A DNA stretch of 64,000 bases from positions 62,001-126,000 of the IMG/VR virus record IMGVR_UViG_3300037502_003770, one strand, 5' to 3'. This document shows, one piece after another, positions 4,377 to 55,989 of this stretch. A program made the translations under genes and the position numbers. Under the pieces are notes generated by a model. The model worked only from the letters and a program-made list of their open reading frames with translations. It did not search any database and was not told the origin of the DNA. Positions within the stretch are counted from its first letter, which is position 1; the number at the start of each line of letters is the position of its first letter.

Positions 4377-6161
4377 ATGTTCAACAAACTAACAACAACA
4401 GGGAAAGCGTTAATTGCCCTACTTATTATTGGTTTACTTATTTGTGGTAAGTTCTTTATTTTCGATAGATTACCTCAAGAAGTTCAAGAATCTCAACATT
4501 TTGGTAAAGTAAGTTTACCAGATTCACCTGAAGCATCTTTAACAGGAAATGCTGCTATTAAATTAGAATTTCCTAAAGAAACAGATGCAAATAATGGTGG
4601 TACAAAAATCATTTGGAAAATGATGGCGTGGCAAAGTCAAAATGGAATTGTTTATTCAAATGGAGGTTCTACCACTAAAGAAAATAGTCTATTTGATAAA
4701 GCTAAATTAGATGTAACACTAGAAAGACAAGATGATTGTTTTAAAAGTTGTGCAGATTTAGTAGCTTTCACTAAACAATACAAAGAAAACCCTGAAACAC
4801 CAGCTGTTTTTATTACATTTATGGGTTCTGGAATTCCAGCCTATATTTCAGGAATTTCTAAACAAGTGGAAGATTTAGGACCTGAATATCAACCAGTAGC
4901 TTTTCTAACAACTGGAAAATCTTATGGTGAAGACCAAATTATAGGTGATAAAAAATATAAAGATAATAAACAAAATCTAAAAGGTGCTACGGTTGTAGGT
5001 GTACGAATGGATGGTGATTTAGATTTAGCTTTAAAACTTTGTGGTGATAATGGAATAAAAGTAAATGTAGATGATAAAGTTTACGACCCTGAAGCTTTAA
5101 ACTTTATGTATTCAGGAACTTTCATGGATGCAGTTGTTATGTATAATAATAATTATTCTGAAACTCGAAAAATCGCTATTAATGGTAAAACAATTGGTAG
5201 AGATACAACAATTAGTGCTGATTTAGTTGCAACATGGACACCAGGCGATGTTAAAGCAAAACAAGGTAGAGGTGGTGTAACAATTATTTCCACTAAACAA
5301 TATGCGAGTATTATGCCAAATATCACAATTACTTGTAAGAAATGGCTAAACGACCACCGAATACAAGCTCAAGAAATTACAAAAGCATGTGCTATCGCAG
5401 GAGACCAAATCAGGACATTTGACGATGTTAAGAAATATGTATCTCGTTTAAATACTGATTTTTATAATGAAAAAGATGCTTCACCTGAATATTGGTACAA
5501 ATATTATAATGGTGAACAAATTGATGAAGATACGAGGTTAGGTGGTTCAATGGTATTTAACTTAGGTGATATGGCAAATATGTTAGGTATCTTCATTGAA
5601 GGACAAACAGACCATACAGATATTTATAAATCAGTTTATAATACCTTTGGTACGCTTCAAAGCAAATATTACCCTAATGATTTACCTAAATACTTAGAAT
5701 ATACTAAGGCTTTTGATAAAACAGTTTTACAAACAGTAATTAATGAAAATCCTGAATTACTCACAGGTAAAATCAATTTAATTGATTATAGTAAAACAGA
5801 AAAAGGCGACCAAATTGGTAATAAATCTTATAATATTGAATTTGCATCAGGTTCATCAGAACTTACCGAAAGTGGCAAACGAGAATTAGATGAAATTTAT
5901 ACTAATATTGTTTCAGCTGACGGTACAAAAGTAGAATTGATTGGTCATACTGATAATCAAGGTATTTCCTCTGAAAACTTATCTCTTTCTGAAAGAAGAG
6001 CCAAATCAGCACTAGAATATCTAAAACAAAAAGGTGTGGAATCTCAAAGATTAGTATCTAAAGGTAGAGGTGATAGTGAACCAGTTGCAGATAATTCCAC
6101 AAGTGCAGGTAGAGCTAAAAATAGAAGGGTAAATATTTCACTCTTTGCTATTAAAGAATAA
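4377..6161 (+). CDS. ABC-type (NitT/TauT-like) substrate-binding protein fused to C-terminal OmpA peptidoglycan-binding domain
   Basis: N-terminal TM anchor; OmpA_C motifs 'IEFASGSSEL','GHTDNQG','NLSLSERRA','GRAKNRRV'. Confidence 0.85.
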   Translation: MFNKLTTTGKALIALLIIGLLICGKFFIFDRLPQEVQESQHFGKVSLPDSPEASLTGNAAIKLEFPKETDANNGGTKIIWKMMAWQSQNGIVYSNGGSTTKENSLFDKAKLDVTLERQDDCFKSCADLVAFTKQYKENPETPAVFITFMGSGIPAYISGISKQVEDLGPEYQPVAFLTTGKSYGEDQIIGDKKYKDNKQNLKGATVVGVRMDGDLDLALKLCGDNGIKVNVDDKVYDPEALNFMYSGTFMDAVVMYNNNYSETRKIAINGKTIGRDTTISADLVATWTPGDVKAKQGRGGVTIISTKQYASIMPNITITCKKWLNDHRIQAQEITKACAIAGDQIRTFDDVKKYVSRLNTDFYNEKDASPEYWYKYYNGEQIDEDTRLGGSMVFNLGDMANMLGIFIEGQTDHTDIYKSVYNTFGTLQSKYYPNDLPKYLEYTKAFDKTVLQTVINENPELLTGKINLIDYSKTEKGDQIGNKSYNIEFASGSSELTESGKRELDEIYTNIVSADGTKVELIGHTDNQGISSENLSLSERRAKSALEYLKQKGVESQRLVSKGRGDSEPVADNSTSAGRAKNRRVNISLFAIKE

Positions 6162-6856: not shown

Positions 6857-7791
6857 ATGAAGGATGATATTTTTTTACAAATTGATATAAATACTGGTCA
6901 CACAAAATACTTTGAACGTGACAGTAAATTTAATTTAAAACTTTCTTTAATTATTATTTATTTTACAGAAGAGACTTTTTTGAATAAAAATGGTTTGTAT
7001 CTTTTACTTATAATGAAAGATGGTAAAACCATTTTCTTTAAAGATTTTAGACATCAAAAAATAATTTATTATGTTGGAAATTAGTATATATTATAATTAT
7101 ACAACTTACAATGAAATTTTTGATATTAGCGTATTGAAATCATGTCTTAATATACAGATAAAAGAATATATAGTTTTCCATGAATATATACAATCTTTTT
7201 CTAAGTTAATTTCATATTATAATAAAAATCTTCGTAACTTAAAATATTATGTTAATAAAAATTAAACTCTCAGAACATTGTTTTTATATTGAGGATTCTT
7301 TATACTCAAGACCTTTTACAAGAAGGAACTTTGCTTTTGATTTAATTTTAAATAATTTTAATGAAATAACATATTTTTTCAATAATAATTTTTATTTAAC
7401 ATGTAATATAAATAAAAATAATATTGAATATTTTGATATTTCACTAATGACTGGTATTAAAAATTTTCTTAATTTAACGCATTATATACCAACATAAATG
7501 TTAGACATTATTTTATATATAGATTGCTTTCAATATATTGAGGCAACAATAGTGGATATCGGTTCACCAAAAAAAATCTTATTTAGATTAGATTTAAATA
7601 ATAAAAATAGAATTTTTATTGAAATAAATAGATTTTCTTTAAAGAAAGGTTATTTTTCATTAATTAACTTTATAAAAGAACGCAAAATTTTATTTAATGA
7701 TTTAGATTATATAAATATTTTAGATTTAAAATATTATTTTAAAATATCAAATTCTATCAAAGAGAAAGATTCTCACCTTGCTTTTCTCTGA
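6857..7791 (+). repeat. Four tandem small YxE-leader / LKYY-type paralogous ORFs (6857, 7071, 7249, 7498)
   Basis: Shared Y-x-E leader and YY-containing ends; overlapping or abutting start/stop. Confidence 0.7.
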
Positions 7792-9072
7792 ATTTAACTG
7801 AAAAACTTTATAAGAATGTAAACATTCTTCAATAGAAACTCTATATCTCATTTTAGAGTTTTTTATTTTAAGGTAAACTTCCTTCCAATCCTTACAATTA
7901 ATAAAAGTTTCCTTCCATTGGTCTTTTATTAACAGATTTGGATAAAAATTTCCCTTATTTCTTTTAATTATACATTCTATTCCCCTGCGTAAAATTTCTA
8001 TTGAGGCATTAACAGCATCGCTGTAATCATATTGCAAATTGCCTATAATAGATGAATACGCAGGATTTATTCTGTATAATTTAATATCTTCAATAAATAA
8101 CCTTTTTGAAAGATTTTCTATAAAAAGATTTCTTTTCCAAAGGTTATTATTTTTTCTATTATATTTTCTTCCTTGACCAGCATTTTTACTTTTAAAAGAT
8201 AAGTCTTCAATAAAAACCGCTTTACAATTATAATACTTTGCAACTAAAGAAATCTTCTTAGAGATTTCAATTACTTCATGTTTAATTTTATTCTGAAAGT
8301 ACTTTGCTTCTTGAGAATCAGTTGATAATTTTAAGGAAATAAATTTATCAGTTAGTTCTTTTAAAGAAAACTCTTGGCAATGAATAAGTTTATCATCTTC
8401 CATAATAGAAATACCTATATTATTAGGATTCATATCTATCCCTAAATATCTTTCTTTTGAAGGGAGAAATTTCTTTTCTTGAGATTTAAATTCTTCAAAA
8501 GAAATATAAATGTATTTTAAATCAAGTTTTACAGAAAATTTATAACCATTCTCAAAACAATCAATATCATTTAATTCCTCAAGTTTAAATAATTCCTTTT
8601 TAATATTTCTTCTTAAAGAAGGGAGGTATAAAGGAATATGTAAATTTCTATTTACTTTAAAAGTGATTTTATTGTTATCAATAATATCTAATTCAAAATA
8701 AGTATTTCCTTTATTAGATGTTGTTCCTTGACAAGTAATAGGTGATAATTTATTTATTTTAAATTCATCATTACTTATCTTACCTTTACATCTTTCATAA
8801 AAGTTATTCTTTCCACCAAAAATAACTTTTTGATTTTGAAATCTTGTATGAACATCTTTTCCTTCTAAAATAGCGTATTCTATTTGTTTAGAATTAAGCT
8901 TTCCAATATTATTTAAACCTTTAAGTAAAGATTTCATTTCTTTAATATCTGTTATCCCTTCAAAATATCTATTATATGAAAACCTTATTACAGAAGAGAA
9001 TTGTTTCATTAAAGAATGGATTTCTTTTAATGAATTTACATCAGTAGTATAAGGCATTTTAATAGTTTTCAA
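7747..9072 (-). CDS. tnpB: TnpB-related RNA-guided nuclease, Zn-finger-less type, copy A (TTG start)
   Basis: RuvC-I YLGIDMN, RuvC-II FIEDL, INPAYSSIIG, RuvC-III SDAVNASIEI. Confidence 0.85.
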   Translation of the reverse strand: MKTIKMPYTTDVNSLKEIHSLMKQFSSVIRFSYNRYFEGITDIKEMKSLLKGLNNIGKLNSKQIEYAILEGKDVHTRFQNQKVIFGGKNNFYERCKGKISNDEFKINKLSPITCQGTTSNKGNTYFELDIIDNNKITFKVNRNLHIPLYLPSLRRNIKKELFKLEELNDIDCFENGYKFSVKLDLKYIYISFEEFKSQEKKFLPSKERYLGIDMNPNNIGISIMEDDKLIHCQEFSLKELTDKFISLKLSTDSQEAKYFQNKIKHEVIEISKKISLVAKYYNCKAVFIEDLSFKSKNAGQGRKYNRKNNNLWKRNLFIENLSKRLFIEDIKLYRINPAYSSIIGNLQYDYSDAVNASIEILRRGIECIIKRNKGNFYPNLLIKDQWKETFINCKDWKEVYLKIKNSKMRYRVSIEECLHSYKVFQLNSEKSKVRIFLFDRI

Positions 9073-14258: not shown

Positions 14259-15581
14259 TTAAATTCTTTCAAAGACAAAAGTTTTCACCTTGCTTTTCTC
14301 TGAACTTAACTGAAAAACTTTATAAGAATGCAAACATTCTTCAATAGAAACTCTATATTTCAATTTAGAGTTTTTTATTTTAAGAGAAATTTCTTTCCAA
14401 TCTGTACATTTAATAAAAGTTTCCTTCCAACGGTCTTTTATTAACAAATTGGGATAAAAATTTCCCTTATTTCTTTTAATTATACATTCAATTCCTCTGC
14501 GTACAATTTCTATTGAGGCATTAATAGCATCAGTATAATCATGTTGCAAATTGCCTATAATAGACGAATACGCAGGATTAATTCTGTATAATTTAATATC
14601 TTCTATGAATAACCTTTTACTTAAATTTTCAAAAAACAGATTCCTTTTCCAAAGGTCATTATTTTTTCTGTTATATGTTTTTCCCTTACCAGCGTCTTTT
14701 TGTTTAAATGATAAATCTTCAATAAAAACTGCTTTACACTTATAATATTTTGCAAGTAATGAAATCTTTTTTGAAATTTCAATTACTTCATGTTTAATTT
14801 TATTCTGAAAGTACTTTGCTTTTTCAGAATCAGTAGATAGTTTTAAAGAAATAAATTTATCAGTTAATTCCTTTAAAGAAAACTCTTGACAATGAATAAT
14901 TTTATCATCTTCCATTATAGATATACCTATATTATTGGGATTCATATCTATTCCTAGATACCTTTCTTTTGAAGGAAATTTCTTTTCTTCATATTTAAAT
15001 TCTTCAAAAGATATATAAATATATTTTAAGTCAAGTTTTACACAAAATTTATATCCTTTCTCACCAAACTTTATATCATTTAATTCTTGAAGTTTAAATA
15101 ATTCTTTTTTAATATTCTTTCTTAAAGAAGGAAGGTATAAAGGTATATGCACATATTTATTTACTTTAAATATAATTTGATTATTATCAATTATATCTAA
15201 ATTAAAATAAGAATTTCCTTTATTATTAGTTATTCCTTGACACGTAATAGGTGAAAGTTTATTTATTTTAAATTCATCTTTACTTATTTTAGCTTTACAC
15301 CTTTCATAAAAATTATTCTTTCCTCCGAAAATAACCTTTTCATTTTGAAATCTTGTATAAACATCTTTTCCTTCTAAAATAGCATACTCTATTAGTTTAG
15401 AATTAAGTTTATTTATATTATTTAAATTAGAAAGTAAAAATTTTATTTTCTTAATATCAGATATCCCTTCAAAATATCTATTATAGGAGTACCTTACTAC
15501 AGAGGAGAATTGTTTCATCAAAGAATGAATTTCTTTTAATGAAGTATCATCTGTAGTGTAAGGCATTTTAATAGTTTTCAA
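14259..15581 (-). CDS. tnpB: TnpB-related RNA-guided nuclease, copy B
   Basis: Close paralog of 7747-9072; D/E/D RuvC residues present. Confidence 0.85.
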   Translation of the reverse strand: MKTIKMPYTTDDTSLKEIHSLMKQFSSVVRYSYNRYFEGISDIKKIKFLLSNLNNINKLNSKLIEYAILEGKDVYTRFQNEKVIFGGKNNFYERCKAKISKDEFKINKLSPITCQGITNNKGNSYFNLDIIDNNQIIFKVNKYVHIPLYLPSLRKNIKKELFKLQELNDIKFGEKGYKFCVKLDLKYIYISFEEFKYEEKKFPSKERYLGIDMNPNNIGISIMEDDKIIHCQEFSLKELTDKFISLKLSTDSEKAKYFQNKIKHEVIEISKKISLLAKYYKCKAVFIEDLSFKQKDAGKGKTYNRKNNDLWKRNLFFENLSKRLFIEDIKLYRINPAYSSIIGNLQHDYTDAINASIEIVRRGIECIIKRNKGNFYPNLLIKDRWKETFIKCTDWKEISLKIKNSKLKYRVSIEECLHSYKVFQLSSEKSKVKTFVFERI

Positions 15582-15671: not shown

Positions 15672-15745
15672 GGACCTATAGCGCAACTGGTCAGAGCAGC
15701 TGACTCATAATCAGCAGGTTTCAGGTTCAAATCCTGATAGGTCCA
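15672..15745 (+). tRNA. tRNA with CAT anticodon, most likely tRNA-Ile2 (lysidine, reads AUA); CCA not encoded
   Basis: Cloverleaf GGACCTA/TAGGTCC, GCTGA-CTCATAA-TCAGC, TCAGG-TTCAAAT-CCTGA. G1-C72 excludes initiator; C4-G69/C5-G68 as in Ile2. Confidence 0.9.
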
Positions 15746-15763
15746 CTTTAAAATTTTATAAAA

Positions 15764-24139: not shown

Positions 24140-24935
24140 ATGTTTATAAAAATAATTATAACAACAAATACATTTTTCTATTCTGAATGTATTACTAGTA
24201 TATATGGGAATGGTAGTAGTTTATTATATTGTGAATATATCAATAGTCAATACTGTTTTAATTTTGAAAAAGCTACTGAATGGAATGCTTATTTCAAAAT
24301 TAATGAAAATTTATGGATTACTTTTCAATTACCTATGTCAGATTTTCATTTAAATGATGTGTATTTATTTTTAGACTTTCGTGATAAACATTCATATAAT
24401 AATTTATCTAATTTTTTTAAAAAATTTAAACCAAATGAATATAAATATTAATACAGAACATTGTTTTTATCAAGAAATTAATTATTATTTAGAATATAAT
24501 ATTAAACCAATTTTTATTTTAATAAATAAGTTTTTTTCTGAGGAATGGTTTCTTCCTTTAATTGGTATAACTTATTTTTATAATAATTTATTTCATAATA
24601 AAACAGTTAAATCTTTAAGAAAAACTCATCTTTATGAATATATATTATTAAGTTTTTTACGTATTAGGATGAAACTTGATAAATTAAATAAAACCACAAT
24701 AAAACAAAGTGTTGATAATTTTATTCATCATACACATATAACATATTATACAGAAAATATTTGTAAAGAATTAATAAAATATTATGGTATTGAAATTATT
24801 AAATTTTTACCAAATAAATTCTTTACTAAAAAACTGTATATTTTTATGTATGATTTATTAGGCAATGAATTGCTTTCTTTACATAAAATATCAAATTCTT
24901 TCAAAGACAAAGGTTTTCACCTTGCTTTTCCTTGA
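24140..24935 (+). repeat. Two YxE-leader ORFs (24140; 24435, whose 3' end runs into tnpB copy C)
   Basis: MFIKIIITTNTFFYSE; MNININTEHCFYQE. Confidence 0.6.
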
Positions 24936-26219
24936 ATTTAACTCAAAAACTTTATAAGAATGTAAACATTCCTCAATAGAAACTCTATATTTCAATCCAG
25001 AGTTTTTTATTTTAAGGGAAACTTCCTTCCAATCCTTACATTTAATAAAAGTTTCCTTCCAACGGTCTTTTATTAATAGATTTGGATAAAAATTTCCCTT
25101 ATTTCTTTTAATTATACATTGAATTCCTCTGCGTACAATTTCTATCGAGGCATTAACAGTATCAGTATAATCATGTTGCAAATTGCCTATGATAGATGAA
25201 TACGCAGGATTTATTCTGTATAATTTAATATCTTCAATAAATAATCTCTTTGAAAGGTTCTCTACAAACAAATTTCTTTTCCAAAGGTTATTATTTTTCC
25301 TGTTATATGTTGTTCCTTTACCAGCATTTTTATCTTTAAAAGATAAATCTTCAATAAAAACAGCTTTACAATTATAATATTTTGCAATCAAAGAAATCTT
25401 TTTTGAAATTTCGATTGTTTCAAATTGTATTTTATTTTGAAAGTACTTTGCTTTATCAGAAGAAGAATCTAATTTTAAAGAAATAAATTTATCTATTAAC
25501 TCTTTTAAAGAAAATTCTTGACAATAAATAAGTTTATCATCTTCCATAATAGAAATACCTATATTATTAGGATTCATATCTATTCCTAGATATCTTTCTT
25601 TTGAAGGGAGAAATTTCTTTTCTTCATTTTTAAATTCTTCAAAAGAAATATAAATATATTTTAAATCAAGTTTAATAGAAAATTTATAACCTTTTTCAAA
25701 ATTAGGTTTTACATCATTTAATTCTTGAAGTTTATACAAATCTTTTTTAATATTTTTCCTTAAAGAAGGTAAATATAAAGGTATATGTAATTTTTTATTT
25801 ACTTTAAAAATGATTTGATTATTATCAATTATATCTAATTCAAAATAAGAATTTCCTCTATTATTGGTAACACCTTGACACGTAATAGGTGAAAGTTTAT
25901 TTATTTTAAATTCATCTTTACTTATATTTCCTTTACATCTTTCATAAAAATTATTCTTTCCACCAAAAATAACCTTTTGATTTTTAAATCTTGTGTGAAC
26001 ATCTTTTCCTTCTAAAATAGCGTATTCTATTAATTTAGAATTTAAATCTTGAATATTATTTAAACCTTTAAGTAAAGACTTTATTTTTTTAATATCAGTT
26101 ATTCCTTCAAAATACCTATTATAAGAAAACCTTACTACAGAAGAGAATTGTTTCATTAAAGAATGAATTTCTTTTAATGAATTTACATCAGTTGTATAAG
26201 GCATTTTAATAGTTTTCAA
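24891..26219 (-). CDS. tnpB: TnpB-related RNA-guided nuclease, copy C
   Basis: Close paralog of copies A and B; GIDMN / FIEDL / TDTVNAS. Confidence 0.85.
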   Translation of the reverse strand: MKTIKMPYTTDVNSLKEIHSLMKQFSSVVRFSYNRYFEGITDIKKIKSLLKGLNNIQDLNSKLIEYAILEGKDVHTRFKNQKVIFGGKNNFYERCKGNISKDEFKINKLSPITCQGVTNNRGNSYFELDIIDNNQIIFKVNKKLHIPLYLPSLRKNIKKDLYKLQELNDVKPNFEKGYKFSIKLDLKYIYISFEEFKNEEKKFLPSKERYLGIDMNPNNIGISIMEDDKLIYCQEFSLKELIDKFISLKLDSSSDKAKYFQNKIQFETIEISKKISLIAKYYNCKAVFIEDLSFKDKNAGKGTTYNRKNNNLWKRNLFVENLSKRLFIEDIKLYRINPAYSSIIGNLQHDYTDTVNASIEIVRRGIQCIIKRNKGNFYPNLLIKDRWKETFIKCKDWKEVSLKIKNSGLKYRVSIEECLHSYKVFELNSRKSKVKTFVFERI

Positions 26220-43409: not shown

Positions 43410-46219
43410 TGAAAACAATAGAACAGTTATTTCAAGAAAGAATAAATTCTTTTATTGAAAATAAGGTTTTAAGAAGATATGAAATTCAAGCGATAAAAAA
43501 TGAGTATTTTTCTATTTATTTACCTATTTTACCAAAATTCAATATTATTAAAACGTATTTTCTACCCTTTAGAATATCAAATTATAATATTCGTTGCGTA
43601 AGTGAAGAATATCATGAATTTAATATAGATATTCCTTTCAGAAATAAGATTTATAAAATAAAATTACCAAGTTAACAAAAAAAGAAATTATGTCAAACAA
43701 AATAAGACAATATACTTCAGAAGAAGTTCAATATATGATGAACCCTTTTGTTGAATTTATAATAAAAGGTAATTTGTTATATATGATAACTAAACAGTTA
43801 GATTATAGTAGTATTTATATATATGAGGCACGTGACCAAGATATTTTAGATGAAATAAAAGATGATATAACAAATGATATTGACTATTTAGTATCTTATA
43901 TTCCTGATATAGTTGGTACACATTTAAATGAATTAAATTGTGAATTAATCTTTAACAAAGATAGTCTAACTGGAGACCCATTTACTGAATTAAAAAACAA
44001 ATATTCACTTTAAAATATGTCTCTTCCCAAAGAAATAATTCTTTCTAAAATAAAAAGTTCTTTTTTAAAAGCACGTAATAATGGTGCTTTTATATTTTAT
44101 TATACAGCTTTACTTGGTTACAGACTAGAGTTTTATTCTAAAAAAGATATTCAATATTATTTTCTACCTTTTAAAATAACCTTTCATCATTCATTTTATA
44201 ATGATGATAATGAGGTAACAATTTATTTTAAAGGTGTGGAATACACATTTAATGTTATTACAAAAAAATTAACTATATATGAAAAAAAATAATTCTTTTC
44301 TTGAAGAAAAGTTTTTGTTAAGATTTACAAATTATATTAATGAAATTGAAACTGATGGTTTAAATATAATAGAAGAAATAGAATATAATTCTTTTAGATA
44401 TTTTTTACCATTTAAAATACAATCTGAAGTTGTTTGCTTATTTGGTAATTTTTATTTTGATATTACATTTTCAAATAAGACATATAGATACGATTTTCAA
44501 ACAAGAGAAATAGAAGTTTTTGATGAATAAAACTAAAACAATAATTATTTCTAAAAAAATAAGTTATTCTTTCTTTAAAGAAAGACTGAATAAATTGGTG
44601 AATATTGATAAAAAATTTACTTCAGATGATTTTATTTATTATACTAATAAAATTTATGGTATTCAACGTCATCATATCAATATAATAAAATATTATTTAT
44701 TACCGTTTAATATATATATTTCTACTATATCAGAAGAAAATCGATTAATAGTATTTTCTTTTAGAGGTATCAAGTATACATATAATATGGAAACAAATCA
44801 CCTTAAAAAATAAACATATGGTTTATACATTAGATATTTAGATGATGAATAAAACTAAAACAATTATTATTTCTAAAAAAATAACTTATTCTTTCTTTAA
44901 GGAAAGACTGAATAAATTGGTGAATATTGATAAAAAATTTACTTTAGATGATTTAGTTTGGTTAAGTTCAAGAACAGGTGGTCATACTATCCATTCTATT
45001 CCATATCGACATATTAAAATGATAGAATATTATTTATTACCATTTAAAATATATTTATTATATATATCTGAAAATTATTTAATACAATTTTATTTTAGAG
45101 GTGTTAAATATACTTATAATATGAAAACAAATCATCTTAAAAGAAATCCTTATGTTTTATAAAAAATATTCTTTTGAAAAAGAAATCTTACTTAAATTTA
45201 ATAAATTAATTGATGAATTAAAATTTACTGGTGAGATAAATCATGTTTTTGGGTTTGATAATTTTCATTATGTTTATTATTTAAAAGATGAAGTAGTAAA
45301 AAAATTAAGAAAAGAATTATTACCATTTAAAATAAAAATTCCATTAGGTTTTAGATATACAGATTCAATATATTTTCATTTTAGAAAGAAAATATATAAA
45401 TATAATATTAAAGAAAATATTTTTAATACTTTAGATATTTAAATAATGAATAAAACGATAGAACAACTTTTTCAAAAGAAAGTAGATTCTTTTAAAGAAA
45501 AAAATGTTTTAGAAAGTACGGATGATTGGTGTAAAGAAAATCTTATTCATTTAATAATTTTACTTGATATTAAAAAAATTAAAAATTATTTTCTACCTTT
45601 TAAAATTGAAGTACTAGACTTTACAGCATATACTGACCAAGTTATAATTATTTTTAATAATAAAAGATATACTATTAAAATAAATGATGAATAAAATAGA
45701 ACAACTCTTTCAGAATAAAGTAGATTCTTTTAATAAACTTTCATTTTCTGAAAGAAGTAGTTACTTTAATAAATATTCTTTTTTTGGTGGTTATAAACGT
45801 GATTATATTATAGCTGTTAATACAGTAAATAAATTACAAAGATATTTCTTACCTTTTAAAGTAAATATAATTACAAAATATAGGTCAAGATGTAACATTA
45901 TATTATATTTTAATAATAAAGAATATAAATTAAAAACACCTAAATAATGAATAAAACAATAGAACAGTTATTTGAAGAAAGATTTTATTATTTTATTGAA
46001 AATAAAATACTCACAAATCAAGATATAAATATTTGTTTACCAGATAAAGAATATTACTTTTGTTTACCTTGCATATCTAAAATTCATATAATTGAAGAAT
46101 ATTTCATACCTTTCAGAACAACATATTTAATTAACTGTTTAGATAGAGAAAAGCATCTTTTTCGGTTAATGATTTATTTTAGAGGTACGCTTTATAGTGG
46201 AAATCTTCTTTCAGAATAA
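43409..46219 (+). repeat. Nine tandem 'YFLPF' paralogs (43409,44017,44279,44520,44842,45152,45446,45684,45947)
   Basis: Conserved (Y)(F/L)(L/I)PF(K/R/N)x and F-x-x-x-x-Y; several begin M(N)KTIEQLF. Confidence 0.8.
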
Positions 46220-46230
46220 ACATATCTTTT

Positions 46231-46294
46231 TTAACAGAAAGAATTCTTTTTTGTAATATAAATCAAACTAAACAAAAAAATTAAATTCCTTATG
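46231..46294 (+). promoter_or_regulatory. Promoter/leader direct repeat, near-identical to 46652-46715
   Basis: ttaacagaaagaa(t/g)tctttttt(t)gtaatataaatcaaactaaacaaaaaaa...ttccttATG brackets ORF 46292-46627. Confidence 0.8.
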
Positions 46295-47459: not shown

Positions 47460-47476
47460 TAAAATCATTTCCTTTC

Positions 47477-47521
47477 AAAAAGACTTCTTTTTTAACAGAA
47501 AGAAGTCTTTTTTGTAATATA
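47477..47521 (+). promoter_or_regulatory. Hairpin-promoter cassette
   Basis: Same repeat as 46637. Confidence 0.8.
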
Positions 47522-47549
47522 GATAATTCTAAATAAACAAAAACACTTT

Positions 47550-48305: not shown

Positions 48306-48584
48306 ATGGAATATCATATTAAAAGAAAAAATAAAAATAATACAAAAACAAGTGCATTAACTGATATGTACGAAGTTTATTTAATGGAGAATATTTACCC
48401 TGAAAAGATACTATATCAATCAACAAAAGAAATTATTGAAAATTTGAAATCAGGTCATAAATATTATGTACCTAAAAATAAATTAGATAGAATTGAAGTA
48501 ATTCATGCTAATGGTGAACATATCAAAACTAAAGCCGACACAGAAACAATAAATAATTTATACAATTTAGAAAATTATAATTAA
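48306..48584 (+). CDS. DUF3892-like protein
   Basis: IIENLKSGHKYYV...IKTKADTETINNLYNL. Confidence 0.6.
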   Translation: MEYHIKRKNKNNTKTSALTDMYEVYLMENIYPEKILYQSTKEIIENLKSGHKYYVPKNKLDRIEVIHANGEHIKTKADTETINNLYNLENYN

Positions 48585-48585
48585 A

Positions 48586-48867
48586 ATGAATCAATATAAA
48601 ATAACACATCGAGATAAAAATAATCCAAACACAAACCCTTTAGATGATAAATATAAAGTAGAATATAAAAATCCCTTTAAAAATCCAACAATTATTACAA
48701 CAAAACAAATTATTGAAAATATTGAAAAAGGTGATGAATATTATATTGTTATTGATAATAACAAAACAATTGTAAAAGTTGTAAAGAAAACAACAGGTGA
48801 AAAATATATTACTACAATGTCTGATGACACTATAGATAATAACTTATTAAATTTACCTCCATATTAA
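48586..48867 (+). CDS. DUF3892-like protein
   Basis: IIENIEKGDEYYI...YITTMSDDTIDNNLLNLP. Confidence 0.65.
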   Translation: MNQYKITHRDKNNPNTNPLDDKYKVEYKNPFKNPTIITTKQIIENIEKGDEYYIVIDNNKTIVKVVKKTTGEKYITTMSDDTIDNNLLNLPPY

Positions 48868-49195
48868 AATGCAAAAATTAGTTGATACAAAAAAACTTGT
48901 TAATGTAAGAATTTTAAGTAAATCTAATTTAAATGATGGTTTTTATTTTGGTACTGCTCATCATATTACAGATGGAACTATTGGTGATATTATTATAACT
49001 TATGAGGAAATAGTTTATTTAGTGAGAAATTCTTATCCGATTTATATAAATTCCACAAATGAACGTTTAAAATATCAAAATTTTAACTTGTATTCATATG
49101 ATATTACAACATCAAGTCAAACAAATAGTTTTGAAAATTTAAGGTACGCATCTTATTATGAGGAATTATATATTAATGAATTTTTAAAATAATTA

Positions 49196-49549
49196 ATGAA
49201 TATGAAAACAGAAGTTAATGAATGGAAAGATGGTAGGTTTGCTATTTTTGATTCCGAAACAAAAAAGATTCTTGATGATGCACAAGGTTATGGTTATAAA
49301 ACCAAACAAAATGCTTTAAAAGCTATGTGGTATAAATTTAAAGGTGGTAAAGAAAAGAAAGATGAAGAAAAGGAATTATTTAATAAATGGATAAAAGAAA
49401 ATAAAAAAGTTTATAATACAATAAATGATTATTTTGAATCAGCTTTTAAAGAAATAGCAAGAGGTGAAACAACTATTAAAGAAATTTATCAAGAAATAGA
49501 AGAAGAATTTAATATTAAAATACCTGATTATGTAATTAAAAATATGTAA
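49196..49549 (+). CDS. Conserved hypothetical protein (LDDAQGYGYK motif)
   Basis: Distinctive motif; function unknown. Confidence 0.55.
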   Translation: MNMKTEVNEWKDGRFAIFDSETKKILDDAQGYGYKTKQNALKAMWYKFKGGKEKKDEEKELFNKWIKENKKVYNTINDYFESAFKEIARGETTIKEIYQEIEEEFNIKIPDYVIKNM

Positions 49550-49555
49550 CCTTTT

Positions 49556-49951
49556 ATGAATAAAATAACTATTTTTAATGAAAATTTTATTTATTTAGAA
49601 ATGATTATTTCTAATATGGAATATTTAAATATAACAAATTTATATATAAATAAATACACTTTAAAATCAATGGATAAAGAAGATGAAAATGTTGTCTCAT
49701 TTATAGCATCTATTTTATTAGATAGATTAAATTTATTTAAAGATTGGTATTTTTATTTCTATAAAATAACAGTAGAAAGTGAATTTAGATATATAAGTTT
49801 TGTATATAATACAATAATGAATCAACAAGAATATTATGATATTATATATAAGATATATTTAAAAGATAAATCTATTATTGAAAAATATAGAGAAATTTTA
49901 ACACCTAAAGTTGTCAGAAATCTTTTAGAAAATAATAAAATTATTTCTTAA
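49556..49951 (+). CDS. YxE-leader protein
   Basis: MNKITIFNENFIYLE. Confidence 0.6.
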   Translation: MNKITIFNENFIYLEMIISNMEYLNITNLYINKYTLKSMDKEDENVVSFIASILLDRLNLFKDWYFYFYKITVESEFRYISFVYNTIMNQQEYYDIIYKIYLKDKSIIEKYREILTPKVVRNLLENNKIIS

Positions 49952-50002
49952 CTAAAAAGATATATTTCTGTAATATAAATCAAACTAAACAAAAACGGCA
50001 AT

Positions 50003-50320
50003 ATGAAAAAAATCTTATTCTTAATATTATTTTCTATAATAAGTGTTTCTTTTTACTCATGTGGTAAACAAAGGAAAAGTAACACAAAAAATTATACTTT
50101 AATTTATGAAGCACCTTGTTTACCTGAGTATATTATTTTTTATGATGAAACATTAAAAGAAACGGTAACATATTCTTCACATAAAGCAAAAAATGATAAT
50201 ATAACTGAATTTACTTGTCAGTATGTTAAAATTTCATTAAAACAAAAATATTCTGAAATAATAATCAAAGATACTATTGGTTATCAAAAAATGTTTTACA
50301 CTCGTGATTTACAATATTAA
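50003..50320 (+). CDS. Lipoprotein
   Basis: Lipobox FYSC; own promoter at 49948-49977. Confidence 0.65.
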   Translation: MKKILFLILFSIISVSFYSCGKQRKSNTKNYTLIYEAPCLPEYIIFYDETLKETVTYSSHKAKNDNITEFTCQYVKISLKQKYSEIIIKDTIGYQKMFYTRDLQY

Positions 50321-50321
50321 T

Positions 50322-50421
50322 AATATGTAAGCGTAGTAAAGCTCCGTTAATGATAGGTTAAACTAAGGGTTTGGCTCTATGTGCGAGAAACCCTGAAAGA
50401 CCCGAAAAACGCTTACATATT
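50322..50421 (+). ncRNA. Candidate structured RNA, family unassigned
   Basis: Perfect 13-bp terminal stem AATATGTAAGCGT/ACGCTTACATATT, inner AGGGTTT/AAACCCT stem, GC well above background. Confidence 0.55.
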
Positions 50422-50470
50422 TTTATTTTAAATAAAATTCTTTACTTAAAAAAACTTTAAGAATATTATC

Positions 50471-51466
50471 ATGAAACTAACAAAAAAAGTAGAAGAAAAA
50501 ATAATAGCGGTTTATACTGAAAAAAATGGTTTCACCAAAGTAATGAAGGATGGAAAAATGAATCTTCTAAATAAAGAAGGTGTATTAATTTCAGATACTT
50601 GGTATGATAATATTTTTTATAATGGACTAAATAATTTTTTGATTGTAGAAGTTGAAGACAAATATAATTTTTTAAATGATGATTTTAAATTAATTTCAGA
50701 TACTTGGTATGATAATATTTCAGGTTTTAATAATAATTATTGTTTTGTTTATTCTGATACGATAGATAAACAAAATCTTATTAATAAAGAAGGTAAAATT
50801 TTATTAGATACTTGGTGTGATTATATTGAAAATCTTAGTTACCTTAACGATAAAGATTTCTTTATAAAAGTACATATTGATGGTAAAACTAATATCTTTA
50901 ATGAAAATTTAAATTTACTGTCAAATGTTTGGTATGATTCAATATATATTGTAAATGATTATAACATTAGAAAAAGTAGAAAAAATACAACACATACTAT
51001 ATTAGTAGAGCGTGATAAAAAATATAATTTTATTAATAGAGATGGTAAATTATTATCTGACACTTGGTTTGATAATGCTTTCAATTTTACATTTGAGTTT
51101 GCTAGTGTAACTCTTAATGATAAAGTTAATTTTATTAATAGAGATGGTAAATTATTATCTGACACTTGGTTTGATAATGCTTCTAATTTTCACTATAATA
51201 ATTATACTTTATCTGAAGTTGTATTAAATAATAAAGTTAATTTTATTAATAGAGACGGTAAACTAGTATCTGACACTTGGTTTGATTATGTTAACCTTCA
51301 TCCTGATAGTGAGTATGGTATTGTAAGAATTAATGATAAATTTGGTTTAATAAATAAAAAATGTTTATTGGAAACAGAAGTAATCTATGATGAAATAAAA
51401 CGAATTAGTATGTCTGATAAGTTTGAATTTCATTTAAATGGTGAAGTTTATGTTCAAGAAGAATAA
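50471..51466 (+). CDS. WG/KWG-like repeat protein
   Basis: Repeated K(Y/V)NFINRDGKLLSDTWFD units, some near-identical at DNA level. Confidence 0.75.
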   Translation: MKLTKKVEEKIIAVYTEKNGFTKVMKDGKMNLLNKEGVLISDTWYDNIFYNGLNNFLIVEVEDKYNFLNDDFKLISDTWYDNISGFNNNYCFVYSDTIDKQNLINKEGKILLDTWCDYIENLSYLNDKDFFIKVHIDGKTNIFNENLNLLSNVWYDSIYIVNDYNIRKSRKNTTHTILVERDKKYNFINRDGKLLSDTWFDNAFNFTFEFASVTLNDKVNFINRDGKLLSDTWFDNASNFHYNNYTLSEVVLNNKVNFINRDGKLVSDTWFDYVNLHPDSEYGIVRINDKFGLINKKCLLETEVIYDEIKRISMSDKFEFHLNGEVYVQEE

Positions 51467-51472
51467 AAATTC

Positions 51473-51518
51473 AAAAAGACTTCTTTTTTAACAGAAAGAG
51501 GTCTTTTTCTGTAATATA
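51473..51518 (+). promoter_or_regulatory. Hairpin-promoter cassette
   Basis: AAAAAGACTTCTTT-TTAACA-GAAAGAGGTCTTTTT. Confidence 0.75.
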
Positions 51519-51548
51519 GATAATTTTAACCTTTAAATAAATCAGTAA

Positions 51549-52163
51549 ATGACAAAATATAATGAAGTAAAGAAGTTTTTCAATAATGAAATATTTTCTC
51601 AATTACCTTCTCATCATTTTACAAGTATTGTGGGTAGAACCACTAAATTTGCTAAAGTTATAGCAAACCTTAACCCTACTTTGGTTATACCTGGAGAACA
51701 TATTGATAAATTAAAAACTTTTATTTCATATATAGTATGGTTAGACTCTTCACCAACTAAATATGACCGATTTGGTGGTATTCTTACTGTGGAATATTTA
51801 GAAGAAATAATGAGAGTTATTGTTTATGAAATAATATTTTGTAAACAAATGAAACTTGACAATTCTTTTAGGAAACCTGAAAATAATACTTACTATAGAT
51901 TTGAGATTGATAGTAATGAATCTTTAAATACAGAAGATTATATATCTATCTTAGATAGTTTACCTGATTTGGAAGCTATAAAATCTGAAGAAAATGAAAA
52001 TGTAATATTTGAAAAAATATTTTTACTATCACAAGAATTATATAACCCTCAGCATCCAATAAGAAGATTTTTATATTCTAAATTTTCTTTATATGAGATA
52101 CAAACAGTTATATCTGATATCATACTAACTAATGATTATGAGAAAATTCAATATAAATTATAA
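51549..52163 (+). CDS. Protein resembling the C-terminal region of type IIG R-M/methyltransferase enzymes
   Basis: EEIMRVIVYEIIF ... ELYNPQHPIR; recalled similarity only. Confidence 0.35.
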   Translation: MTKYNEVKKFFNNEIFSQLPSHHFTSIVGRTTKFAKVIANLNPTLVIPGEHIDKLKTFISYIVWLDSSPTKYDRFGGILTVEYLEEIMRVIVYEIIFCKQMKLDNSFRKPENNTYYRFEIDSNESLNTEDYISILDSLPDLEAIKSEENENVIFEKIFLLSQELYNPQHPIRRFLYSKFSLYEIQTVISDIILTNDYEKIQYKL

Positions 52164-53065
52164 TAATTATGACTTTAGATAACTGTTTACCTGATGGCTA
52201 CGTTCCAATTTCAAATGTATCTTTTTCTGAAAGAATGAAGATTATTAATAATATATTTATCCCAACAGAAGAAATTTATATTAGAAAAGAAACTTCTTGG
52301 GAAAGAATAACTTTTTATAAACAAGTTGTCTTTGAATATGAAATAGCTATTTCAGGTAGAGATTTTTTTGAAGTAAACAAACTTAAATAATTATCACCTT
52401 TAAAACATTTATTATGCAAAAAGTTAAACTAACATTATTTGACAATGAATTTAGATTTGGTGAACCTACTAAATTTTATGAAGTCAAAAAAGAATATTAT
52501 TTCCTATCAAATAGGAGTTCTACTGAGATAAAAGAAATTTTTGCAAAATCAAATGAATTAACAGGACTTGATTTTGAAAAACTCTTTTTAAGAAGAAATG
52601 AATATAATAGACGATATACTTTAAATAAAGATGAAATTTCAATTCTTGAAGAAAACGGTATTGATTTTTCAAAAGTTCTTAGTACTTTTTTTTATTCTCA
52701 CATGATATTTTTAGATTTAAGTCGTGATGGTGAAGGTGGTTATGTTTTTAAAGAATATGATTCAATAAAATTATTTGTTGAATATGTAAAATTATCAGAC
52801 CCCGAAATAATTTTAGAACTAGTTGATGGGTATGATAAATTATTTAAAGACAGTAATAATCAGAAAATATGGGATGAATATTCAAAATTATCCGATTCTG
52901 AAACAATAATTAGATTGATTGAACCATACTCAAATGAGTATGAAAATATTGATGTTTCTTTTATATTATGGTTAGCTAGTATTTATAATTATTCATAATT
53001 AGTACTAAATTAAAGATAAACAATATTTTATAAACAAAATTAAATAAAAATTCTTTTCTTTCAAT

Positions 53066-53107
53066 AATACTTCTTTTTTAACAGAAAGAAGTATTTTTTG
53101 TAATATA
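53066..53107 (+). promoter_or_regulatory. Hairpin-promoter cassette (AATAC/GTATT variant)
   Basis: Compensatory arm change relative to AAGAC/GTCTT copies. Confidence 0.8.
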
Positions 53108-53558
53108 GATAATCTTAAACTTTAAATCATTTATGAAAAACATACTTCTTAAAATAAGTATATTCTTAATGAATATAAATTTCTTGAAAGGAAAAATATC
53201 TTTTTCATTAAAAAGTGATATACTAAAGAAATATTTTGCACCTTATGTTTCTCGTTCTTTTGAAAAACAATCTTTTAACCCTATAATTATTTTTAAAGAA
53301 TATGATAACGCAATCATTGAATATGGTAAAATATTTAATGATGATTATAGTTCTCCTGATTTATGGTCTAGGTATAAAGGTTATCAAAAAGGTAGATATA
53401 ATTATAATAAATCCGAATATAAAGGAAATTTTATACAAAATATTTGTTTAAGAATTATTATTTTTAATGTGAAAATACCTATTTTAAGGAAAAGATTTGT
53501 ATATAAAAGTTAAACAGTTTAATAGTACTGAAATACGTCTGATAAAATTATTAATCTC

Positions 53559-53601: not shown

Positions 53602-53944
53602 GATAATCTTAACCTTTATCAAAATGAATAGAAAAACAGAACTTCATGAAGAATTAAAATCTTTATTTGAAAATAAACTTAAAGAAGATAGGGATTTTAA
53701 ACTATCTTTTGACGAACAAGAAGTACCATTCACATTAGAAGTAAAATATACGGGTAGTAATGAAGTAACACAATTTAAAACATATATAAAATCATTTAGT
53801 TGGTATGGATTTTTAATGTGTGATTTTTATACTTTACCTGAAGATGAAAATTTTAAAGATGGTTTTTGTCAGATAATTGTTGATTACACAGAAGAACAAT
53901 TAGAATATTTTATAAGCAAACTTAAATAAAATTCTTTTCCTTTC

Positions 53945-53989
53945 AAAAATACTTCTTTTTTAACAGAAAGAAGTATTTTTTGTAATATA
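53945..53989 (+). promoter_or_regulatory. Hairpin-promoter cassette
   Basis: AAAAATACTTCTTT-TTAACA-GAAAGAAGTATTTTT-GTAATATA. Confidence 0.8.
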
Positions 53990-55989
53990 GATAATCTTAA
54001 CCTTTAGAACATTTATGAAAAAAGATTCATTTGAAGTAATAATTACTGGTACTAATAAAGAAGGTAATAAGCAAACTTTTAATTATCATAATATTAGTAT
54101 ATCAGGTTATGGTAATTATGTTGAAAATAACTTTTCTTTTTGGAAAAAGATAATTCATTTATTATCATCTCTTTTTTTAGGGAAAATGTATTTTATTAAT
54201 TCTGATTTTAAGTTTAAATTACTGGCTCATCTAATGATGTTGGATAATGCTATTAAATTAAAAGAGTTAAGAAATATGAGTTTAAAGTTAATACCAACTG
54301 TATCAGATTTTCTTGATATAAATTTTTATTATCAAGAAATACTTGAAACTAAAGGTATAACTTATGGTGAAGTCTTTTGGATTAAAAATAAAAATAACTT
54401 TGATACATTAGCTTTATGGTTTAATTCAACTGTATCTAAAAATCTCTCAAAATAAAAATCTTTATGCAAAGAATATATCATTTTAGTTTAGTAAAATCTT
54501 TAGATGAAAGTAAAAAACCTTTCAAAAAAATAACTAGACAGTACGCAAGTATTCCTTTGTCTGATAATGATTTATTATCAAAGTTATTATCATCTTCATT
54601 TAAAAATGATAGTGAAATAAAAATTGATTCAATAAAATCATTTATTTCTTTGTTAAAGAAAGAATTAAATATAAAAGATGTTATTGAGTTTTTTGAAACT
54701 ACCGTAGAATTATTATCTTCTTCAGAAAAACTATCTCTTGAAATAAACTATTAAAAAAATGGAAAACATAAAAAGTTATAAGAATAGTTTATTACTATCT
54801 ATTTTAGATAGTTTTAATTATTTAGCTACACTTAATAGTAATTCTATTAATAGTGTATATATTTCTAATAATAAGATTTCATTACCTTGTGATTATAATA
54901 CAATTACATTATATTTAGATGATACTCAAGAAGGTAGTTTATTAGATAAGTTATATTTTTATACAAATTCATCTCTTCAAGGAAATCTTTTAGATTTACA
55001 AGTTGAAACTATTCATCAATTTAAAGATGTTTTATCTGATATGGTTTTACATAAAAAAGATTTAATCCGTAGTATTGAAATTCTTTTTAATGGTAAATCT
55101 AAAAAACTTAATACTATTCAAGAAATAGGAATTAAAGAAAATGATTTACTAATAGATTTTGATTGGGATGGTAACGTTTATCATTGTAATCGCATTATTA
55201 GTTATGGTCAATATGAAAAGAATATTTATATTGAAATATATATTGTTGATAATGGAAATAGTTATAGAGTACCATTATCAATAAGTAATTTATCGATTGA
55301 TACTTTAATTAAAGTATATCATTACTTAAACAATTTAAACATTTCCTTATAATAATCCTTTCCTTATGAAAAAACTTATTTTTACAATACTAATTTTATT
55401 CTTAGGAATAAATCTTTATGCTCAAAAAACTCATATTATAAAAGAAGATACTGCTTTTATATATGTGGATTCTAAAGCAACGTTAGCTGAACTACAAGAA
55501 GAAAATAAATCTTTAAAAGTAAATATTGTTATTTTAAATAATAATATTAAAGATTTACAAAATGAAATAAAAGAGAAAGAAAATGAACTTTATAGTATTA
55601 TAACAACAATGTTATTGATTATTATTTTAATTTTCTTTCATAAATATATTATTCAAATAATTACGCAAATCATTAATAAAATTATTTGGCATTTACCACT
55701 ATAAAATTAAACAAAACATTTCTCTAAAAAACAAAACTTAAATGAAAATAAATAAGATTTTATTAATAATACTACTTCTAATAGTAAGTATATTTCTTAT
55801 AGTAAAAGTATTTTCTTTACTATTATACATTATTTCAAGTATATTTCTTATTGCAATGTTAATTTTTATCTATGAAACAATAACAGATTTTTTTAAAGAA
55901 AAATAATCTTCTTTAACAAAAGACATTCTTTTCTGTAATATAAATCAATTATTAAAGTAAAATCATTCTTTCAAACAAAACTAATTCTT

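Follow-up and report, generated by a model that had tools for sequence, protein, structure and literature searches.

The stretch of DNA analysed here (the window) comprises 64,000 nucleotides, bases 62001-126000 of a 312,694-bp IMG/VR virus record from a subsurface metagenome, IMGVR_UViG_3300037502_003770, which is 96% complete by CheckV and has 22% G+C. The proteins of this 312.7-kb jumbo phage include a DNA polymerase and a tail sheath; with the polymerase as a query, nothing close was found, the nearest cultured phages being only ~24% identical, and an exact-protein look-up found only the source contig. Between two + strand genes of the window, a 105-aa lipoprotein-like ORF and a WG-repeat ORF, lies a 100-nt element whose parts, named according to the fold inferred below, are as follows.

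50003..50320 (+): upstream 105-aa lipoprotein-like ORF, with no family assignment, its stop codon lying 1 nt before P1
50322..50334 (+): 5' arm of the 13-nt closing stem P1
50335..50339 (+): AGUAA, the conserved unpaired AGNNA motif right after P1 (candidate T-loop 1)
50342..50344 (+): 5' strand of helix h3 (CUC), pairing with GAG at 50385-50387
50353..50357 (+): 5' strand of the pseudoknot hairpin P2 (AUAGG), pairing with UCUAU at 50376-50380
50366..50372 (+): 5' strand of P3 (AGGGUUU), in the loop of P2, pairing with 50388-50394
50376..50380 (+): 3' strand of P2 (UCUAU)
50385..50387 (+): 3' strand of h3 (GAG)
50388..50394 (+): 3' strand of P3 (AAACCCU)
50394..50406 (+): UGAAAGACCCGAA, conserved unpaired block before the P1 3' arm (candidate T-loop 2 plus flank)
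50409..50421 (+): 3' arm of P1
50420..50429 (+): T-run (TTTTTATTTT) after P1, a possible transcript end
50471..51466 (+): downstream WG-repeat ORF

The observation that drew attention to this locus, a G+C-enriched structured element closed by a perfect 13-bp inverted repeat and followed by a T-run, is confirmed. The element has 39% G+C against 21.8% for the window, and among the non-coding stretches of the whole genome it ranks with the tRNA genes for local G+C. Its terminal repeat is the only perfect 13-bp inverted repeat within 120 nt in the window that has at least 4 G/C per arm, where first-order Markov simulations expect 0.05 per window. Folding yields -27.6 kcal/mol on the + strand (z -2.97) and -29.4 kcal/mol on the - strand (z -4.76). 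Of the inner stems named in the original prediction, AGGGTTT/AAACCCT (P3) and TAG/CTA (part of P2) are confirmed by family covariation, whereas the GAG at 50385-50387 pairs, by homology, with the CUC at 50342-50344 and not with the CTC inside the loop; the proposed alternative GGGT/ACCC pairing is not supported, as GACCC belongs to a conserved unpaired block.

What kind of element is this? At gathering score, Rfam models returned only tRNAs in the window and in the whole genome, and in the E-value mode, up to E 10, only chance-level hits at E 2-8 to known riboswitch, ribozyme or other classes of Rfam 15 were obtained; in six relatives nothing was found apart from tRNAs and one weak RNase P hit. 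The element is not a tRNA or tmRNA, as neither ARAGORN nor Rfam detects a cloverleaf. It is single-copy in the genome, and in relatives its terminal stem covaries as an RNA helix instead of being a conserved repeat, which does not support a miniature inverted-repeat element. A scan for intrinsic terminators, defined as short G+C-rich hairpins with a 3-8 nt loop before a U-run, called none in 49800-50600; a U-run is present, but the stem encloses 74 nt, too large a loop for this rule. From the sequence, a retron ncRNA (no reverse transcriptase nearby), an integron attC site (no R'/R'' boxes) and a hammerhead core (CUGAAAGA does not fit CUGANGA) were considered and dropped.

The surroundings of the element are variable. 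Aligning public contigs to 48500-52500 revealed a ~95% identical phage in an aquatic metagenome (contig L020), which keeps the element but lacks the WG-repeat gene together with its terminator and promoter unit (50441-51525), such that the element there sits directly before the homologue of the next gene. Two further relatives, L018 and L019, have a 97% identical lipoprotein but lack the element entirely, unrelated DNA starting right after the stop codon. The element is therefore part of a variable accessory region. In L020 it differs at four positions, 50345, 50352, 50357 and 50362, while the adjacent 318-nt ORF differs at three. None of the four substitutions breaks a helix or a conserved block; G50352C adds a pair to P2 and G50357A turns a G-U into an A-U, the other two falling in unpaired, variable positions. 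This looks like a maintained structure, though it rests on only four events.

A BLAST search of the element against cultured phages gave only AT-rich flank matches, a pattern scan with the exact P3 hairpin gave no hits, and searches with both flanking proteins for related viral loci returned nothing. Three looser patterns, by contrast, found relatives. GGGTTT, gap, AAACCCTGAAAGACCC found 4 loci in viral contigs; AGGGTT, gap, AACCCTGAAAGACCCG found 40 loci in metagenome contigs and none in 185,579 prokaryote species genomes; and an independent pattern anchored on the 5' half only, AGTGAAGCNGTTAGG, gap, AAGGGTT, found 27 loci in viral contigs. In the latter, the 3' block was still conserved, as AACCC[C/U]GA[A/G]A[G/U]ACCCGA, so that its conservation is not only an artefact of the patterns, which fixed parts of the conserved blocks. 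In total, about 45 distinct relatives were recovered. BLAST searches with family members further located the module, unannotated, in cultured phages: Escherichia phage mogra, between tRNA-Met and tRNA-Arg; the Klebsiella jumbo phages RaK2, K64-1 and Muenster; Klebsiella KP13-26; Erwinia Hena1, between tRNA-Gly and tRNA-Glu; and Pectobacterium PM2. In RaK2, an unannotated tRNA-like 3' half (T-arm and acceptor ending in CCA) lies immediately upstream of the module (L094:1440-1495; JQ513383 ~176965-177020).

In 38 non-identical members with the same topology as the window element (type A), the order of parts is P1 5' arm, AGNNA, A-G-C-N-N (h3 5' strand), UUAGG, P2 5' strand, an A-rich linker, AGGGUU (P3 5' strand), RUAGUA, P2 3' strand, AAAC, N-N-G (h3 3' strand), N, AACCC (P3 3' strand), (U/C)GAAAGACCCGAA and P1 3' arm. 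The proposed fold was examined for covariation on a MAFFT alignment of these sequences that was not fitted to the structure: 85.7% of cells are paired, and the covariation score is 0.358, against 0.148 +/- 0.011 in shuffles (0 of 500 reach it) and at most 0.133 when partners are slid; a smaller alignment gave the same picture. P1 has at least 13 different sequences among relatives, and seven of its 8 aligned pairs show changes on both sides. The 3-bp helix h3 is paired in all 38 members, its variable pairs being U-A 30 / A-U 8 and G-C 31 / C-G 6 / A-U 1. P2 has at least 12 different complementary pairs; across the family, cognate strands pair at -9.7 kcal/mol on average and non-cognate strands at -6.4, and 0 of 100,000 permutations reach the observed sum. 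In P3, GGGUU/AACCC is invariant, partly because the search patterns required it, but the sixth pair covaries (U-A 17, A-U 14, C-G 3). AGNNA directly follows P1 in all 25 loci of a first set and in 37 of the 38 members (as AGUGA, AGUAA, AGUUA, AGCGA, AGCAA or AGAAA). The RNA is placed on the window's + strand by G-U pairs in the helices, by flanking tRNAs on the same strand, and by a sigma-70 promoter 25 nt upstream in the relative L021.

The window copy has all four helices and the conserved unpaired blocks next to P1: the 13-bp P1, AGUAA, h3, P2, a 7-bp P3, and an exact match to the 3' block at 50394-50406. It is, however, the most divergent type-A member. Its P2 is weak (-4.9 kcal/mol); of the blocks GCNGUUAGG, RUAGUA and AAACC found in most members, it has GCUCCGUUAAU for the first, reading GUUAAU where relatives have GUUAGG, lacks RUAGUA, and has GUGCGAG in place of AAACCNG. 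Hence, a covariance model built from the 38 members scores it at only 51 bits (E 3.9e-10 over the whole phage genome), the lowest score among type-A members, against 70-103 bits for typical members, and even this score is partly by construction, the element having been in the seed alignment. A weak second hit of the model at 4723-4811 (+) (17 bits, E 0.28), containing AACCCTGAAACACC, lies inside a 594-aa OmpA-domain ORF (4377-6161) and is most likely chance. With this divergence, the absence of the element from near relatives, its location in a region with gene indels, and the nearest tRNA being about 35 kb away, the most serious rival for this particular copy is that of a decaying or neutral passenger, acquired by recombination and now serving at most as a transcription stop for the lipoprotein gene, P1 being followed by a U-run as at local terminators. 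We consider this unlikely, as all four helices and the conserved unpaired blocks are intact, the differences from L020 avoid constrained positions, and the ordinary terminators of the phage are simple hairpins, such that a 100-nt pseudoknot is not needed to stop transcription.

The local terminators belong to a repeated intergenic unit with at least 15 sites in the window (e.g. 46200-46278, 47461-47539, 49917-49995, 53047-53125, 53929-54007), consisting of a terminator-like hairpin (GACTTCTTT...AAAGAAGTC), a T-run and then TGTAATATAAATCAAAC about 15-25 nt before start codons; it is probably the phage's own promoter with an upstream terminator. One such promoter-like motif, at 49947-49995, precedes the lipoprotein gene, so the element is probably transcribed with it, whereas sigma-70-type promoter matches near the element are at chance level (11 found against 6.8 +/- 2.9 in shuffles). 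Transcription is inferred from sequence alone, none of the listed sequencing runs holding this DNA being on record as RNA. Elsewhere in the genome, three paralogous ~435-aa ORFs without a Pfam match (7747-9057, 14259-15566 and 24891-26204, all on the - strand of the window) lie within ~1.3-kb DNA repeats, most segments of which are 86-92% identical while one copy drops to 66% in one segment; one of the ORFs lies next to the tRNA-Met gene at 15672-15746. Outside the window, a 1,375-nt stretch without ORFs (G000:C1:155462-156836) holds a 60-nt peak of 75% G+C, the highest in the genome, without an Rfam match at gathering score.

A clue to the role of the module comes from nine lineages in which its P1 is a 5-6-bp stem inside a ~290-320-nt RNA on the following phage contigs.

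L028:116-434 (-): RNase P-like RNA
L045:3790-4110 (+): RNase P-like RNA
L046:534-846 (+): RNase P-like RNA
L047:992-1307 (-): RNase P-like RNA
L034:929-1217 (-): RNase P-like RNA
L064:19-318 (-): RNase P-like RNA
L066:588-895 (+): RNase P-like RNA
L041:1787-2082 (-): RNase P-like RNA
L036:7606-7940 (-): RNase P-like RNA

These RNAs have a terminal stem, a hairpin in the P3 position, GAGGAACUUCAG, resembling CR-I, then GGUGCAAG, and UAGAUAAAUGA...ACA(G/A)AAUUCUGGGUA, resembling CR-IV and CR-V. Rfam's archaeal RNase P model (RNaseP_arch) aligns exactly these blocks and leaves the module in the specificity-domain insert, albeit at 17.3 bits, far below the gathering score of 84. An HMM of the nine RNAs aligns to E. 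coli rnpB at CR-IV/V (E 0.03 in 12 kb), its next-best match, at E 17 and so not significant, falling at CR-I. Helices P1, P4 (long-range), P5 and P7 are 95.1% paired, 12 of 25 pairs show changes on both sides, and the covariation score is 0.336, against 0.123 in shuffles (0 of 500 reach it). We take these to be phage-encoded RNase P-like RNAs, possibly minimal RNase P ribozymes, in which the module lies between the P7 strands, where the specificity domain belongs; the window copy, by contrast, has only its own P1. None of these RNAs was found in the 185,579 prokaryote genomes by the module pattern. Homology to canonical specificity domains is not demonstrated, as the family model does not detect that of E. 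coli rnpB.

Could the free-standing module be one half of a split RNase P? As far as detection allows, this was rejected. No match to RNase P RNA (RF00010, RF00011, RF00373) and no catalytic domain with P4 formed by CR-I and CR-V was found at E up to 10 anywhere in the 312.7-kb genome; the HMM of the phage RNase P-like RNAs hits only 50386-50407, and ORFs flank the element on both sides. Likewise, none was detected in the complete genomes of mogra, RaK2 and Hena1, while the L028 record, serving as a positive control, was found.

Most free-standing copies instead occupy a slot in tRNA arrays on the same strand, the next tRNA starting 15-20 nt after GACCCG and the previous one often ending just before P1. 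Two lineages carry the module in a tRNA-Leu-like scaffold with acceptor, D and T arms, in place of the anticodon arm (L030:1379-1504(+), equal to L038, and L050:370-465(-)), both fusions reading GCUCAUAAG where others have GCNGUUAGG. Just downstream of the type-A module of another contig, a second tRNA-Leu-like scaffold (L033:433-593(+)) is called by ARAGORN as tRNA-Leu(taa) with a 78-nt insert, too short for a group I intron. There are also circularly permuted forms, some with P1 capped by a loop and the linker opened (L021, L022, L037), others closed by a new stem at the linker (L029, L049, L059). As circular permutation is typical of small ribozymes, and as the location between genes and tRNAs and the conserved unpaired nucleotides would also fit, a self-cleaving or processing module that cuts polycistronic transcripts could be envisaged, but this appears very improbable: there is no match to a ribozyme family in Rfam, even at E up to 10, other than at chance level, and a self-cleaving insert would destroy the RNase P-like RNAs that carry it as an internal domain. 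Similarly doubtful is a T-box-like or riboswitch-like cis-regulatory sensor, in which binding of tRNA or another ligand would stabilise P1 and, together with the U-run, terminate transcription before the downstream gene or tRNA. While P1 is followed by a U-run here and in several relatives, and the permuted form of L021 lies in a 5' leader after a sigma-70 promoter, many copies have no U-run and sit 5-10 nt from the next tRNA, and the module also works as an internal domain of a larger RNA, exists in permuted forms and has no common downstream gene.

The one established job of the RNase P specificity domain is to recognise the T-loop/D-loop elbow of pre-tRNA, through the J11/12-J12/13 module of two interlocked T-loops with the signature AGNNA...UGNNA (PMC3664808; PMC11143913; PMC7191817). 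The tRNA-elbow docking module is characterised by an interdigitated three-dimensional fold with a stacking platform for G19:C56. The phage module has AGNNA and UGAAA on opposite strands beside P1, the window copy reading AGUAA and UGAAA; however, the second motif starts with C in 12 of 38 members, with CGAAA instead of UGAAA, rendering a strict double T-loop reading shaky. Together with its position in the RNase P-like RNAs and its habit of sitting among tRNA genes, this leads us to infer that the module docks on tRNA or pre-tRNA, probably at the elbow. Alternatively, its partner might be a protein, such as an RNase P protein, a nuclease or a modification enzyme, or a small ligand, with its genomic contexts reflecting shared processing or regulation. 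Long invariant unpaired stretches such as GAAAGACCCGAA are typical of ligand or protein contacts, a C at the first position fits a canonical T-loop poorly, and the E. coli specificity domain is not detected by the model. We regard this as the less likely alternative, given that no protein-coding neighbour is conserved across lineages and that the module replaces the whole specificity domain in the RNase P-like RNAs.

How does the module compare with known systems? Unlike the RNase P specificity domain, it is only ~90 nt long, has no P8, P9, P13 or P14, carries the P2/P3 pseudoknot in place of P12, and is usually free-standing with no catalytic domain detected in the same genome. The small stable RNAs rnaC and rnaD (species 1 and 2) of phage T4, of unknown function, occupy the same kind of slot in a tRNA cluster (L096:1909-2172; NC_000866 70908-71171), analogous to that of the module in the T4-like phage mogra, and rnaC ends in a tRNA-like T-arm and acceptor; yet they contain none of the conserved blocks and are not hit by the model, and homology was rejected. 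The T-box Stem I distal region and the ribosomal L1 stalk share the AGNNA...UGNNA signature and bind the tRNA elbow by stacking (PMC3664808), but T-box elements are cis-acting leaders with a specifier loop and an antiterminator, the L1 stalk is part of 23S rRNA, neither has the P2/P3 pseudoknot, and neither was matched by Rfam here. Minimal RNase P RNAs (type T of Thermoproteaceae) show that the catalytic and specificity domains can be separated in nature (PMC7191817); type T keeps the catalytic domain and loses the specificity domain, while here the opposite part is found alone. Rfam 15 has no such family, and our literature searches found no description of a phage-encoded RNase P RNA or of a free-standing specificity-domain-like RNA, although absence from the literature searched is no proof that the family is undescribed.

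The interpretation in the original prediction, which offered a small RNA, a riboswitch or ribozyme, a decoy RNA or a miniature inserted element and could name no family, is thus supported in part: a structured small RNA gene on the + strand is borne out and a tRNA-binding, decoy-like role is a reasonable inference, but the element matches no known riboswitch or ribozyme class, is not a repeated inserted element, and can in fact be assigned to a family, one absent from Rfam and not visible without searches. In our best explanation, held with moderate confidence, it encodes a ~90-100-nt RNA, probably made as the 3' end of the lipoprotein transcript and ending at P1 plus the U-run, that folds into a compact pseudoknot in which P1 closes the molecule, h3 and P2 stack inside it, AGGGUU in the P2 loop pairs with AACCC downstream, and the unpaired strands AGNNA and UGAAAGACCCGAA face each other next to P1; in this phage it would act in trans as a tRNA-binding RNA. 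Our analysis establishes the family membership, the fold, the strand, the single copy and the absence of a detectable catalytic domain, while transcription, the binding of tRNA and the benefit to the phage are inferred; for the latter, altered tRNA processing, protection of tRNAs, or competition with host factors that read the elbow are candidates.

More tentatively, phages may carry a free-standing, miniaturised version of the specificity domain as a trans-acting or leader-borne RNA that clamps the tRNA elbow, which would be a new class of RNA binding tRNA by shape. It might be used to steer tRNA processing, to shield tRNAs from host anticodon nucleases, or to compete with host RNase P, T-box leaders or the ribosomal L1 stalk, and some phages would encode their own minimal RNase P ribozyme built on this module, with an unusually small specificity domain. 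The presence of the family, unannotated, in culturable phages of E. coli K-12, Klebsiella and Erwinia makes the idea testable at the bench. If the inference holds, the tRNA-recognition half of one of life's oldest ribozymes has been cut loose and spread through phages as an independent small RNA, which would add an RNA-only tRNA binder to the phage toolkit, alongside phage tRNAs and tRNA repair enzymes, and give a concrete candidate function for the old puzzle of unexplained small stable RNAs in phage tRNA clusters.
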